A stretch of 64,000 nt of DNA from Macrostomum lignano (GCA_002269645.1 NIVC01003287.1:42487-106486), one strand, 5' to 3'. Counted from the first letter of the stretch, positions 48,946 to 54,537 are shown. Numbers and translations: made by a program. The notes: generated by a model not told the origin, from the letters alone.

Positions 48946-49164
48946 TCACTTCTTGCCGTAGCTATATCGGCGGCGTTGCCCCTTGGCAACAGGTTGAACT
49001 TCTTCATCGTAGTCGTCGTCAGCTTCCAGCGGCTCGTCAAGACTTTCGCCGGCGATGTCGTCAAGCGAGTCGGGCTCTTCCACCTGATCCCACTGGTTGC
49101 TGGCTGCCAGCTGGGACACGAGGAACAGGGTCAGCAGCAGAGCGATGCCAAGTTGCATCTTCAT
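48946..49164 (-). CDS. 72-aa secreted peptide precursor, copy A (signal peptide, acidic spacer, basic C-terminal peptide GQRRRYSYGKK)
   Basis: Hydrophobic N-terminus, D/E-rich middle, RRR site and terminal GKK amidation-type signal; frame conserved in the duplicate. Confidence 0.75.
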   Translation of the reverse strand: MKMQLGIALLLTLFLVSQLAASNQWDQVEEPDSLDDIAGESLDEPLEADDDYDEEVQPVAKGQRRRYSYGKK

Positions 49165-49984
49165 GGTTCAGCTGTGCTTGGTTTTGAAAGGCTTGAATAA
49201 ATTTTAAACTTTCCTAGTTGAGACAGAGAGGCGCTGCTTCGGGTCAGCTGCTTTTAAAAGCAGCTCTAAAACGTGCCATGCAGGGCGCTGTGGGTGCACG
49301 TTTTCAATGCAATGCTTTGCGTGGCACAGACTGCGTGCTGCCTTGCCCAAGCTCACCTTAGTTTTTGCTCCATGCATCTCTTCATCTCTCACTGCTTGCC
49401 ATAGAGGCTGGACAATGCAGCTACTTGATGAAGATACTGCACGTGCCAGTCTAACAAGATGGGAACCGCACACGGCTCACTTGTGGCTCAAAATGAATTA
49501 AACTAGCTGGCTACTCAACCTGCATCTTTTATTGCAAATAATTCTCCAAACCCTTAAGTTTGGCCTCTTTAACACTAGTCGTCTATAGATGCATTCATAA
49601 ATTTAGGACTCTCACAACTCGCGTGACTGGCTGACAACGTATTTTGTTGTTGTTGATATAGGATTGTCGCAAGCCCTGGCACCCGCAATTTGCTCGGGGC
49701 AGAATTAACAAAATTGCTTCGTTTGTAAAGGAGTAAGTAAGCACTGCACAGTCCTTATACAGTCCACCACAATATAACTGCAGAAATTTCTCTGTCACAC
49801 ATTTACTCCCGAACCTAACATAACTCTAACCGCACTCTAACCTAAACCTGAGATGAGATGAGAGGAGAGAATAGATAATAGGAGAGAGGAGAGGAGAGGA
49901 AAGGAAAGATATGAGATCAGAGTAGAGAAGAGAAAAGATAGAAGACAAGAGAGAGGAGAGAACTTAGAATAGACACAAACCTTT

Positions 49985-50078
49985 AGCGGGCCGGATTGCT
50001 ATTGTGCAGTTTCAAAGGACCCGAGGGCCGAATTGAGAGGCTTCGTGGACCGCATGTGGCCCGAGGCCAGAGTTTGCT
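49985..50078 (-). mobile_element. Short non-autonomous DNA-transposon (hAT/MITE-like) end fragment
   Basis: Reverse complement matches 56268-56350 (AAGCCTCTCAATYCGGCCCTCGGGTCC...CACAATAGCAATCCGGCCC). Confidence 0.5.
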
Positions 50079-50215
50079 GACCAAGTGCATCATAAGGTTC
50101 ATAAAGTAAGATAATCCTGTACTAACTAAATGTTTTTTTTGGACATTAGGTAATAGTCTAGAGGCTATTATTAAGGGAGAACTTAATTTCGGACACTCTT
50201 CATTTCTGACACTAT

Positions 50216-50320
50216 TCATTTCGGACACTGCTCCGGCTGGCCGCCAGTGGCCACAAGAATTGACTGCACCATCAGCAGAGTGAGCAGTAGTGCAATGCCT
50301 GTGAGTTGTCGCTCGATCAT
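50216..50320 (-). pseudogene. Truncated third member of the peptide-precursor family (MIERQLTGIALLLTLLMVQSILVATGGQPEQCPK*)
   Basis: Shares GIALLLTL with the 72-aa precursors but stops after 34 codons, in a short GTGTCCGAAAT-like repeat. Confidence 0.45.
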
Positions 50321-50571
50321 TGCCTCGAATGTCTCATTTTTTTCTGTGAAATATCTTACTACTGAGTCTGAAATCTGTGGCTCTTTTCGAAAACTCCTAT
50401 TTAAAGTATGAGAGCCAAAAGACACGGACGGCGGATTTCGAATGACTTCTCCTGATGGTGCAGTTGTGGAGATGATATACTTACTATGCTATAAAAAGGA
50501 GAACTTCAATTGAGAAGGTTTCGATTATTTTGAGATCGCTCCAAGGATCTGGGCGAACTTATTGGTATTCC

Positions 50572-50745
50572 CCCTCTCTCTCTCCCTCTTTCTCCTTCTC
50601 TCACCATTCTCTCCGTCCCTCTCTCTCCCCCTCTCTCTCCTTCTCTCCCTCTCTCTCTCTCCCCCTTCTCTCCGTCCCCCTTTCTCCCTCCCTCTCTCTC
50701 CCTCTCTCTCCCTCTCTCTCTTTCTCTTGGTCTCACTATCTCTCC
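50572..50745. repeat. CT-rich low-complexity tract
   Basis: Direct sequence. Confidence 0.9.
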
Positions 50746-50789
50746 CTACCCCAAACACCTTCTCTCCCTATTTTTTATCTTTAAATACT

Positions 50790-51800: not shown

Positions 51801-51844
51801 AGCCCTATTTTCACCGTGTCAGCGCCTGAGTTTGGAGGTGCCCT

Positions 51845-52180
51845 CCTTTCCCCCCCTCTCTCTCCCCCATCTCTCTCTCCCTCCCTATCTCTCTCCCCTA
51901 TCTCTCTACCCCATTCCCCTATCTCTCTCTTCCTCTCTATCTCTCTCCCCTATCTCTCTCTCCCCCATCTCTCTCTTCCTCCCTATCTCTCTCCCTATCT
52001 CTCTCCCCCATTCCCCAGTCTCTCTCTCCCTCCCTATCTCTTTCCCCTATCTCTGGCTCCCCTATCTCTCTCTACCCATTCCACTATCTCTCTCTCCCTC
52101 TCTATCTCTCTCCCCTATCTCTCTCTCCCCCATTCCCCTATCTCTCTTTCCCCCATTCCCCCATCTCTCTCTTCCTCCCT
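51845..52180. repeat. CT-rich degenerate repeat (CCCCTATCTCTCT-like)
   Basis: Direct sequence. Confidence 0.9.
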
Positions 52181-52184
52181 AATG

Positions 52185-52745
52185 CAGCCTGATGCAGCGG
52201 GCGCGCAGTCGCAGGTCGACCCGCAGCAGTCGCGGGGACAGAGAGGTGCAGTGCACGCTCTGCTGGAGGCGCGGTCCGATCAGTACGCCGACACCGCCCG
52301 GCCGCGGTCGTCTGCCGACGTTTACAGGAGGCTCCAGCCGGCTCCGAGGTCCTCAGAGTGGAGCCCCGGCTCAGCCACGATAGAAATCTCCTGCAGCGGG
52401 ACGAGGTCCAGCTGTAGGTCGTGGGCCAGCTGGACAAGGATGGTGCGACGCCAGGGGGCCTTCAGAGTTCGGCAGTTCATCGTGCCGAGTCTGAGGCGGC
52501 CACCTGGTACAGCTGGGCCAAATGAAGGTTGGCCTCGTGGTCCCCAGTGGATCCATAGATGAAGTTGCAGGGACTGGGGACAACAGGCGCCTGGCCGCGC
52601 CACGGAGTCGCCCTCGCCGGTCGCGTTCGCGCCGCCGCTCAGTGCGACGTTGCGCGCTGCGCCGACCTCTGCGTGTCCCTGGTGTGCTGATCTTTGTTGC
52701 CGCAGCCGAGACGCGGAGTCCGAGCCAACCGAGGTCATCCGCGTC
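52185..52745 (-). mobile_element. 5' fragment (AP endonuclease start) of an RTE-like LINE
   Basis: LRLGTMNCRTLKAPWRR...LQEISIVAEPGLHSEDLGAGWSLL parallels the N-terminus of ORF 61586-63019; disrupted. Confidence 0.85.
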
Positions 52746-52985
52746 CTGATGATCTAGCCGCGATGCCAGGAGTTGTCAGCACTATTTGTACTTTTGTGAA
52801 AATATAATGGCTCGTCGTCACGTCACAGGGCGCGGTTGACGGCCTGGGTGCGAAGGATGGAACGCAGTAACACTTCCTGCACCGGCTGTGGCCCGACCGC
52901 ACAACAAGTCGCTTGGTGACTCGTACTCGTCACAGATCTTGAATGACAGAACAGAAATCCACTTTAGTGCCTGAAATTCACTCAC

Positions 52986-53081
52986 CTGTAAATTTAAATC
53001 GCCAACGTCGTCGCCTAGAATGGCCGTACCAGCCAGATCTGGCACACAGTCTCCGATGCAGACGGCTTCTTGACCTGGCAT
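52986..53081 (-). CDS. Duplicate of peroxiredoxin exon 1 (MPGQEAVCIGDCVPDLAGTAILGDDVGDLNLQ) with intact GTGAGT donor and no own downstream exons
   Basis: Same 32 aa as 47193-47288 with 4 nucleotide differences, all synonymous. Alternative exon or gene remnant is unresolved. Confidence 0.5.
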
Positions 53082-54318
53082 ACTTCTCTTGTTGAATAAT
53101 TTCCTTTAAATAAAGTACTTCTTGAACTGACTTTGACTGAATTGGATTCAGAAAAATGCGCTGCTGTTCTGCTTTAAGGCCGAAACTTGCTCAAAACCGT
53201 GGAATAAAAAGTTATAACACCTTTTCCGTTCCATTTCCACAAAACTACCATTCCAATTCGGCAAGCGGCATTCAATGTCGAAAAGTAAATATTCTATTAC
53301 GAGCGTTCATTCTCGCTCCTGCATGCAGATTTCCCATTCAATTTTAACACATTTTTGTGCGCTGTTTTTTGTGTACTGTACGAGCCATCAATCTTGAACA
53401 GATCCCCTGTCAAGCTAACGACAAGTACTGTAACTCTCTGTGGTTTTCTATAGCATCCCCCTTTCAACAGAGTGCTCTCGGTGAAGTTCGCTTCTAGAAC
53501 ACAGAAGCTTAATGTACGGGAGCATGCACTGAATATATTGTTGAAGAAATATCACAAATAGAATAAGAATGAGCGACGAGGAGATGTTCGAAGAAGCAGG
53601 AGATGAAGAAGAAAAAATCGGTGAGGAAGACGATGAGGTTAAACCCTGGGGGCCATATGGACGCGTGTCTGTTTGTGGACAACGTGAATTTGTTCACGTT
53701 CATCTTTAAGAAGTTTTTAAAGTTTTATAAGAAACTTACAATAGTGACTGTGCGGGGTCAAAAGCCACTGCTCTTCCGATAAAAAACTACGAGTTTCCGC
53801 TGCCTCGACCAGATCAATACCAATTACATGATGGTGTCGACTCAATGTGCTTCTTAAGCTGGCCTCCTCAAAGGCTAGACCCCACGCCACTCCATTAACG
53901 AGGTTGAACAGAACTTCTGCATGCGCTCTCTCGTGGCGAAATTTCTTTGTCATCAATGCAAGCTTTTCACATTCTACACTTTCTACTAATCAATGGACGA
54001 ACTCTACAACTGCTATCTAAAGTTTCTATAGCTAGTAAAAGACATTAAGAAAAGAACGGTTGTTGATCGCCTACGTCTGCTCACACAACCAATTAGTAAA
54101 CAAACAAATATATTTAAAGATTCAGTTTAATTGGTGTCACAATATAACACTGGCACACCTTAATTTTGTGGGGTTCTAAAAATGACAAAACTTTGGACAC
54201 TTTAGCAACACTGTAGTCTGTAGGGTGTTTGCTTGGGAATAAAAAACAGTTTTCAGTAGCATAAGAGTGTTTCACAAAGTTTGATTAAAAACACTTTGAT
54301 GTCTGCTTCACTTTGCTT

Positions 54319-54537
54319 TCACTTCTTGCCGTAGCTTAATCGGCGGCGGCGCCACTTGGCAACAGGTTGAACTTCTTCATCGTAGTCGTCGTCAGCTTCC
54401 AGCGGCTCGTCAAGACTTTCGCCGGCGATGTCGTCAAGCGAGTCGGGCTCTTCCACCTGATCCCACTGGTTGCTGGCTGCCAGCTGGGACACGAGGAACA
54501 GGGTCAGCAGCAGTGCGATGCCAAGTTGCATCTTCAT
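54319..54537 (-). CDS. 72-aa secreted peptide precursor, copy B (C-terminal peptide WRRRRLSYGKK)
   Basis: Same architecture as copy A; first 61 aa identical. Confidence 0.75.
   Translation of the reverse strand: MKMQLGIALLLTLFLVSQLAASNQWDQVEEPDSLDDIAGESLDEPLEADDDYDEEVQPVAKWRRRRLSYGKK

Follow-up and report, generated by a model that had tools for sequence, protein, structure and literature searches.

Two tandem genes for a 72-residue precursor

The subject of this study is a 64,000-nucleotide (nt) stretch of the genome of the flatworm Macrostomum lignano (GCA_002269645.1, NIVC01003287.1:42487-106486; hereafter, the window, with positions counted from its first letter) and two copies, A and B, of a small gene that it carries on the minus strand. 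The window matches contig NIVC01003287.1 of this assembly (Mlig_3_7) at 100% identity across 19.7 kb and ends where the contig ends. The proteins encoded by A and B fall into one 90% cluster with M. lignano PAA88167.1 (BOX15_Mlig015496g1) and PAA78582.1 (g2), both annotated as "hypothetical protein" and belonging to family Mlig015496. A and B are tandem paralogs, 5.37 kb apart, in this small single-exon gene family, which has a distant paralog, Mlig003877. Their coding sequences (CDSs), taken from an open reading frame (ORF) listing, are as follows:

48946-49164, minus strand: copy A, single-exon CDS of 72 codons plus stop, ending ...VAKGQRRRYSYGKK
54319-54537, minus strand: copy B, single-exon CDS of 72 codons plus stop, ending ...VAKWRRRRLSYGKK

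The 72-residue protein of copy A is MKMQLGIALLLTLFLVSQLAASNQWDQVEEPDSLDDIAGESLDEPLEADDDYDEEVQPVAKGQRRRYSYGKK, and that of copy B is identical apart from its end, ...AKWRRRRLSYGKK. Copy B is annotated on NIVC01003287.1 (as Mlig015496), and a CDS identical to copy A is annotated on NIVC01000303.1. The GenBank annotation of Mlig_3_7 was built exclusively on transcript assemblies from RNA sequencing (RNA-seq) (PMC5730564), so a gene model implies transcript support, with the limit that RNA-seq reads are hard to assign to any one of several near-identical copies. Together with a segment of 5′ untranslated region (UTR) homologous to the transcribed leader of Mlig003877, these models indirectly show that at least some Mlig015496 copies are transcribed; the worry that the ORFs might not be transcribed at all is answered in this indirect way only.

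An initial reading made from the sequence alone (hereafter, the sequence-only reading) had described 61 codons with a single synonymous difference, followed by five base differences that change three residues, and the ORF listing and alignment reproduce this description exactly. The single base that differs within codons 1-61 is a synonymous one in codon 8 (GCT/GCA), whereas the five bases in codons 62-67 (GGG/TGG, CAA/CGC, and TAT/TTA) replace G with W, Q with R, and Y with L; the final five codons (S-Y-G-K-K) and the stop are identical.

48964-48981, minus strand: variable patch of copy A, codons 62-67, GGG CAA CGC CGC CGA TAT (G Q R R R Y), including an RRR polybasic site
54337-54354, minus strand: variable patch of copy B, codons 62-67, TGG CGC CGC CGC CGA TTA (W R R R R L), including an RRRR site of the furin/prohormone convertase (PC) type
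48908-48963, minus strand: invariant end of copy A, codons 68-72 (S Y G K K) and the stop, followed by ~38 nt at the start of the 3′ UTR

This clustering is beyond chance. Between -400 and +256 relative to the ATG, 10 aligned positions differ between A and B, and 5 of the 10 lie inside 18 nt (P = 3.5e-4 by a scan statistic with the cluster placed anywhere, 7e-4 for the CDS alone, and 1e-5 by a post hoc Fisher's test of the patch against the rest). The A/B pair on NIVC01000303.1, an independent, ~98%-identical copy of the locus, has 4 of its 7 differences in the same 18 nt (P = 1.8e-3). Further on, the 50 nt from +207 to +256, which reach into the 3′ UTR, contain zero differences across the seven copies that we compared.

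The pair as a tandem segmental duplication

A and B lie in a tandem segmental duplication, whose blocks pair 48908-49601 with 54281-54973 (96.4% identity) and 48693-48859 with 54019-54173 (82.7% identity). A distal pair of blocks was also found:

47021-47423, no strand assigned: distal duplication block, A side, pairing with 52813-53213 at 92.8% identity
52813-53213, no strand assigned: distal duplication block, B side, pairing with 47021-47423

The ~5.4 kb between the copies contains retroelement debris and CT-rich low-complexity DNA. NIVC01000303.1 also carries a B-then-A pair with the same spacing (~98% identity), and NIVC01004092.1 carries B but stops before the position of A. The DV1 line of M. 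lignano has three subgenomes (S, L1, and L2), which differ by ~1.4-2.4% in single-nucleotide polymorphisms and are all represented in Mlig_3_7 (PMC10733133); NIVC01003287.1, NIVC01000303.1, and NIVC01004092.1 are plausibly the three homeologs. A third type of paralog, C, is present as a single gene on NIVC01000200.1 and NIVC01000677.1, is ~5% diverged, and encodes a protein ending in ...ADKEYDEE...WRRRRYSSGKK or ...WGRRRRYSSGKK.

Two artefacts against which the sequence-only reading had cautioned can be ruled out. Alleles misassembled in tandem are incompatible with the different flanks of A and B and with the occurrence of the pair on two contigs. Sequencing errors at the C terminus are excluded as the source of the tail differences, since B on NIVC01000303.1 encodes the same WRRRRLSY by other codons (CGA for CGC and TTG for TTA). 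The same tandem pair on a second contig thus points to neither misassembly nor sequencing error.

Interlocus gene conversion between A and B

We aligned the seven copies with their flanks and counted the three-way site patterns among A, B, and C. From -400 to +182, A and B agree against C at 23 sites, and B and C agree against A at 2, whereas from +257 to +470 the corresponding counts are 0 and 32, with a further 6 indels that include a 58-nt segment. The contrast of 23:2 with 0:32 (Fisher's test, P = 6e-14) means that adjacent segments of the same locus have different genealogies. Non-coding DNA shares this pattern: in the 400 nt upstream, A and B are 99% identical and differ from C by 5-6%, a near-identity that reflects concerted evolution rather than purifying selection. 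The last marker at which A equals B but not C is +152, and the first at which B equals C but not A is +183, which sets the limits of the tract.

49012-49564, minus strand: approximate gene-conversion tract of copy A from the site patterns (about -400 to +152, with its 3′ end between +152 and +183)
54385-54937, minus strand: approximate gene-conversion tract of copy B, counterpart of the copy A tract
48693-48907, minus strand: 3′ flank of copy A, unconverted, ~17% different from B plus indels
54019-54280, minus strand: 3′ flank of copy B, including the 58-nt segment (54218-54276) missing from A, and identical to type C (NIVC01000200.1 and NIVC01000677.1)

These patterns show that the concentration of differences at the end of the gene results mainly from interlocus gene conversion, with the 3′ sequence retaining an older divergence. 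A tract of ~560-580 bp, comprising the putative promoter, the 5′ UTR, and codons 1 to ~51-61, has been homogenized between A and B. Conversion of the prepro part had been offered by the sequence-only reading as the alternative to selection, and it is strongly supported by this conflict of genealogies and by mosaic tracts in other copies.

The mosaics show that A/B conversion is ongoing. Specifically, B on NIVC01000303.1 is A-like at all markers between -331 and +23 and once more between +275 and +350, and B on NIVC01004092.1 contains an A-like stretch that starts at about +296. In addition, the flank of the window's B is identical to the type-C contigs at ~+300 to +600 and ~+1400 to +1900 (about 53937-54237 and 52637-53137) and 5-19% different from NIVC01000303.1 and NIVC01004092.1, its otherwise near-identical homeologs. 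As the background pattern is the opposite, additional exchange among loci or copies is implied. As to the order of events, a relic of the private upstream flank of A persists downstream of the single gene on NIVC01000677.1 (L005 13638-14219 against window 50035-49453, 95.7%), after which the homology ends. It follows that A and B had duplicated before C split off and that A subsequently disappeared from this locus.

Layout of the precursor and its putative promoter

48982-49098, minus strand: acidic, predicted disordered middle of copy A, codons 23-61, with the core LDDIAGESLDEPLE, conserved in the family, and a Tyr in ADDDYDEE
49099-49164, minus strand: predicted signal peptide of copy A, codons 1-22, with n-region MK, h-region LGIALLLTLFLV, and A-A-S at -3 to -1 (hydropathy 2.9 over 12 residues; AlphaFold2 helix at residues 4-23)
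49214-49239, minus strand: 5′ UTR segment of copy A homologous to the transcribed leader of Mlig003877 (for B, 54586-54611)
49246-49265, no strand assigned: perfect 20-nt palindrome AGCTGCTTTTAAAAGCAGCT, ~82-101 nt upstream of the A start codon, with a TATA-like core and flanking CAGCTG (same element upstream of B, 54618-54637)
54355-54471, minus strand: acidic middle of copy B, codons 23-61
54472-54537, minus strand: predicted signal peptide of copy B, codons 1-22 (hydropathy and AlphaFold2)

The layout of a signal peptide, an acidic middle, and a basic C terminus ending in G-K-K, as the sequence-only reading had it, is borne out by hydropathy, charge, and structure prediction. Throughout the family, a short charged n-region precedes a hydrophobic core of 12-14 residues (Kyte-Doolittle 2.9-3.2) with small residues at -3 and -1 (A-A-S or V-T-G). 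From an alignment of six sequences, AlphaFold2 places a helix at residues 4-23 only and models the remainder as low-confidence coil (predicted local distance difference test, 55-60), as would fit a signal peptide with a disordered chain behind it. In the family, the net charge of the middle region is -13 to -16 (-15 in copy A for the stretch up to the RRR site), with about 40% Asp plus Glu, in comparison with +5 or +6 for the tail. The proteins contain zero cysteines, and every Mlig015496 copy has RRR(R)...G-K-K. The ADDDYDEE of Mlig015496, which we take to be a typical tyrosine-sulfation context, lacks its Tyr in Mlig003877. Upstream, the CAGCTG that flanks the palindrome is E-box-like, and another CAGCTG lies ~10 nt ahead of the ATG; the palindrome and these hexamers may be a candidate core promoter or transcription-factor sites.

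The precursor has four parts: a predicted cleavable signal peptide, a predicted disordered acidic region of ~40 residues, an RRR/RRRR site of the furin/PC type, and a final X-S-X-G-K-K. It is predicted to enter the secretory pathway and to be cut after RRR(R) by a convertase of that type, with the basic residues then trimmed. This would free an acidic peptide of ~40 residues, whose evolutionary constraint (see below) makes it the probable functional moiety. A tiny tripeptide amide from the C terminus (LSY-, YSY-, or YSS-NH2) might be released too, in Mlig015496 only, although its importance is doubtful. Alternatively, the protein may be left intact, with the basic tail balancing the charge of the acidic body.

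A distant paralog and the most constrained region

A Pfam scan of both proteins at E values up to 10 revealed no domain, a profile search of the PDB returned noise only and no relative, and a full-text literature search for the gene identifier and peptide strings returned no papers. A word-indexed search of 5.8 billion proteins (single sequence and family profile) and a HMMER search against 1.84 billion representatives retrieved M. lignano proteins only, a result that applies to the searchable data, from which the proteomes and transcriptomes of other Macrostomum species are probably missing. Mlig015496 is thus an uncharacterized, lineage-restricted secreted-peptide family, so far seen only in M. 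lignano.

The exhaustive HMMER search yielded one further family, Mlig003877 (PAA62701.1, PAA58767.1, and PAA80102.1), with the sequence MKLHLLLAIVAVAVAAVAVTGERQFDEDVEQPDDFESALDDIAGDSLEEPLESDEDDISQVAR[VA/LG]RRRTFNKKK. It has the same architecture as Mlig015496 at 45% identity, with every indel a multiple of three, up to 83% nucleotide identity in the core, and a part of the 5′ UTR homologous. Its copies (L006, L007, and L008) are separated by two synonymous changes plus two replacements (VA against LG), and both replacements fall on the two residues before RRR, positions that vary in Mlig015496 too (W/G, R/Q, and an added G). A Lys takes the place of the Gly before the terminal lysines (RRRTFNKKK), so the amidation signal is not a feature of the family.

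Synonymous divergence (dS) is saturated between the two subfamilies, and the ratio of nonsynonymous divergence to it (dN/dS) varies by region:

Acidic core (SLDDIAGESLDEPLEAD): about 0.12
Tail: about 0.34, a value set by R64-R66 and K71-K72, which are invariant
Signal peptide: above 1 (constrained in composition only)

The acidic "spacer" is therefore the most constrained part between subfamilies, and the least conserved element is the tripeptide between RRR and KK (LSY, YSY, YSS, or TFN). Given a constrained acidic region and a variable tripeptide, the main active product is probably something other than the C-terminal peptide, as judged from these comparisons; the missing amidation Gly of Mlig003877 makes the "mature peptide" that the sequence-only reading saw at the C terminus more doubtful still.

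We also considered an ORF between the two copies as a possible third family member (50216-50425, minus strand, MIERQLTGIALLLTLLMVQSILVATGGQPEQCPK). Its hydrophobic stretch (GIALLLTLLMV, 50258-50299) resembles the family signal peptide, and the ORF is identical on NIVC01000303.1. It was rejected as a gene, as its homolog on NIVC01000200.1 has a 2-nt insertion in the signal-like stretch, and it is probably a relic or a chance ORF.

Substitutions in the tail

We mapped changes by parsimony on the five distinct Mlig015496 coding haplotypes and found 5 replacement and 2 synonymous changes in codons 62-72, compared with 3 replacement and 2 synonymous changes in codons 1-61. Substitutions are denser in the tail (7 changes per 33 nt against 5 per 183 nt; P = 5e-4), and the replacement-to-synonymous (N:S) count of 5:2 corresponds to an omega of about 0.75, which is indistinguishable from neutral at very low power (P = 1.0). 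Pairwise dN/dS of the tail alone, with too few sites, was uninformative. The nucleotide divergence of the patch (21%) is close to the 17% of the unconverted A/B flank (P of at least 5 in 24 nt = 0.37) and exceeds the 7% seen in the distal block (P = 0.03). In both subfamilies, replacements concentrate at the two residues preceding RRR, a hot spot where the ratio of replacement to silent changes is not above the neutral expectation. The diversifying selection that the sequence-only reading proposed thus finds no support here, as synonymous changes are enriched in the tail too, and the regional dN/dS places the strongest constraint in the acidic core. Diversifying selection on the tail is unproven; selection that keeps A and B distinct is possible but likewise unproven.

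Other features of the window

Three CT-rich low-complexity blocks (degenerate repeats of the CTCTCCC type; 50549-50746, 51845-52191, and 55340-55597) flank the inter-copy region and lie upstream of B, and they could serve as substrates for rearrangements at the locus. Between A and B, the sequence at 52322-52738 (minus strand) looks by eye like the start of an endonuclease ORF similar to that of a non-LTR (long terminal repeat) retrotransposon at 60286-63019 (minus strand), and Pfam reports no domain there. The retrotransposon contains an endonuclease/exonuclease/phosphatase domain (61586-63019) and a reverse transcriptase (60286-61248), and NIVC01000200.1 has a ~70%-identical insertion of it downstream of its type-C gene. 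A weak gag-type aspartyl-protease match (36113-36607, minus strand) suggests an LTR-retroelement remnant.

Downstream of copy A lies a perfect (ACT)x100 microsatellite (47883-48184, 302 nt, 100% matches), which has no counterpart downstream of B. The annotated neighbor on that side is a peroxiredoxin gene (44319-47288, minus strand; L002 16713-19682) with AhpC-TSA and 1-cysPrx_C domains. The window is unusually rich in long tandem arrays, for example, 2.1 kb of (ACTA)n, 1.5 kb of (AGAC)n, and repeats of a 38-mer (x41), a 22-mer (x62), and a 21-mer (x49), at positions that include 43902-46065, 15924-17448, 9238-10819, 11469-12826, and 5205-6227, among many others; the (ACTA)n array lies inside the span of the peroxiredoxin gene and is presumably intronic. 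Such arrays fit the 15% of simple and tandem repeats reported for the M. lignano genome (PMC5730564). A long ORF at 1647-3362 (minus strand) ends in an NHL repeat (E = 1.8e-10) and is possibly an exon of a TRIM-NHL-like gene. An Rfam scan of the whole window returned no match.

Weighing the readings

Taken together, we favor, at a probability of roughly 60%, the reading that A and B are conversion-homogenized tandem paralogs encoding a 72-residue secretory precursor that would be cut at RRR(R), with the acidic peptide as the functional product. Its evolutionary part is much firmer than its processing part, in which cleavage at RRR(R) and amidation are predictions from motifs. Several other observations weigh against it as well. 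All change counts are small. The three A-specific changes, at positions 183, 187, and 188, form a 6-nt island, with the homogenized tract on one side and 68 nt without variation on the other; selection holding A and B apart may have a part in this, as may a local mutational hot spot in the (CGN)n stretch. There are several double hits within one codon (CAA/CGC, TAT/TTA, and GAC/AAA), and double hits of this kind can arise by selection or by multinucleotide mutation. A simple tract end does not fully account for the island, for the double hits, or for the placement of both Mlig003877 replacements before RRR. Copy A is without a gene call on NIVC01003287.1, and neither Mlig015496 nor Mlig003877 was found in the supplements of PMC5816591, PMC12896417, PMC7336406, PMC5946080, PMC12732829, and PMC6410801.

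A competing reading, which we regard as unlikely though the strongest of the alternatives, makes the basic amidated C terminus (WRRRRLSY-NH2 or GQRRRYSY-NH2) the bioactive product, a neuropeptide, antimicrobial, or toxin-like peptide diversified by selection behind a prepro part conserved as in preprodermaseptins and conopeptides. It would account for the signal, the anionic propiece, and the cationic G-K-K end, all of which are present, and for the significant clustering of differences in two independent haplotypes. It also fits the persistence of every A/B residue difference even though conversion reached within ~30 nt of them (recently so on NIVC01000303.1), the retention of the B peptide through 2 synonymous changes, and the two Mlig003877 replacements just before RRR. 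However, the tail evolves in a neutral-like manner (5:2, omega about 0.75), neither the amidation Gly nor the tripeptide is conserved in Mlig003877, and the strongest purifying selection acts on the acidic region. RRRR is itself a canonical cleavage site, which would leave a "mature" peptide of only 3 residues; even 8 residues with one Trp are short for a membrane-active antimicrobial peptide (AMP), and a protein with no cysteines offers no toxin scaffold.

Somewhat less likely again is a secreted polyanion of ~50 residues that keeps its polycationic tail unprocessed and serves as a gland secretion, a matrix- or ion-binding protein, or a component of a coacervate. What is conserved across subfamilies, namely, the acidic core and the basic residues rather than the processing-dependent Gly and tripeptide, agrees with this proposal, as does the predicted disorder, but the combination of RRR or RRRR with a terminal KK is the textbook signature of convertase/carboxypeptidase processing. 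Conceivably, such a protein could be the releasing factor of the duo-gland adhesive organs, predicted to be small and negatively charged: release of M. lignano from substrates has been proposed to involve a secreted small, negatively charged molecule of unknown identity, which the polyanion would fit, whereas the releasing vesicles are described as protein-poor and polysaccharide-positive, and the supplements of that study contain neither the Mlig015496 nor the Mlig003877 identifiers (PMC6410801).

More speculatively, the genes might form a Macrostomum-restricted signaling or defense peptide system, in which selection keeps the pre-RRR residues and the tripeptide different against ongoing conversion, so that A, B, and the third type would be distinct ligands or effectors; in a still remoter version, the polyanionic peptide would be the adhesion releasing factor. 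Finally, an artefact (tandem-misassembled alleles, sequencing errors, or a non-coding or untranscribed ORF) is largely refuted and very improbable: Mlig_3_7 is highly redundant and chimeric scaffolds make up 36% of its length (PMC5730564 and PMC10733133), and copy A is unannotated here, but 5.4 kb of unique sequence lies between the copies, their flanks differ, NIVC01000303.1 repeats the pair with private differences of its own, identical peptide variants are seen again on up to three contigs, the coding signature persists against the saturated-dS paralog Mlig003877, and the gene models were built from RNA-seq.

As it stands, the analysis documents an orphan family whose members are unannotated or "hypothetical." It also cautions that a conserved prepro part with a variable tail can come from conversion tracts without positive selection and that, in a precursor of this kind, constraint can lie in the "spacer." Should its products prove bioactive, the locus would add a lineage-restricted secreted peptide family in a genetically tractable flatworm (transgenesis and RNA interference) and provide a compact natural case in which conversion halts shortly before the sole codons by which two paralogous products differ.

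Comparison with known systems

The nearest systems in layout are the preprodermaseptin-type precursors of amphibians, the arminin-type precursors of Hydra, and short flatworm prohormones, and the lack of homology sets the family apart from all of them. Amidated neuropeptide prohormones (npp/spp/FLP-type) combine a conserved peptide with a drifting spacer. Those of flatworms and other invertebrates resemble the present family in being precursors of 70-120 residues that lack cysteines, carry a signal peptide and basic cleavage sites, and have a C-terminal ...G-K-K. In Mlig015496, by contrast, conservation is reversed: the tripeptide is the least conserved element, the spacer is kept (dN/dS 0.12 in the acidic core), one paralog is without the amidation Gly, and no described family is matched. 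The absence of any cysteine likewise sets the family apart from a conopeptide-like framework, and Hydra NDA-1, with its cysteine-rich cationic domain and other layout, was dropped as a comparator.

The order of signal, anionic propiece (-15), and cationic C terminus (+5 or +6) is that of AMP precursors. AMPs are typically amphipathic and at least 12 residues long, whereas the tail here has 8-10 residues including the cleavage site, or 3 if cut after RRR(R). Nor does dN exceed dS in the variable domain, as in hypervariable AMPs: the rate is raised (P = 5e-4), and N:S is 5:2 at very low power. Hydra arminins are host-defense peptides with an anionic N-terminal part, a cationic part of ~30 residues ending in G-K-K, and proven bactericidal activity. 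Like arminins, which are restricted to Hydra (PMC6369191), the present genes form a lineage-restricted orphan family of secreted precursors in which an anionic part is followed by a cationic one ending in G-K-K. Here, the basic part has at most 10 residues, and no homology between the two was detected.

Amphibian preprodermaseptins consist of a signal, an acidic propiece, a basic site, and a cationic C-terminal peptide, often with a Gly-basic amidation signal. The parts follow the same order as in Mlig015496, and in both cases the prepro part is near-identical among paralogs while the C-terminal part differs. There is no sequence homology, and the C-terminal piece of 3-10 residues is not amphipathic, compared with 20-35 residues in preprodermaseptins. 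Furthermore, Mlig015496 has no replacement excess, its acidic part is constrained in the long term, and the near-identity of the A and B prepro parts is demonstrably due to gene conversion.

The closest parallel in process is the textbook concerted evolution of tandem duplicates, with which the locus shares a sharp-edged homogenized tract, conflicting genealogies on either side of its edge, and patchy tracts in other haplotypes. It differs from the textbook case in where the tract stops, shortly upstream of the codons that alone set the two products apart.

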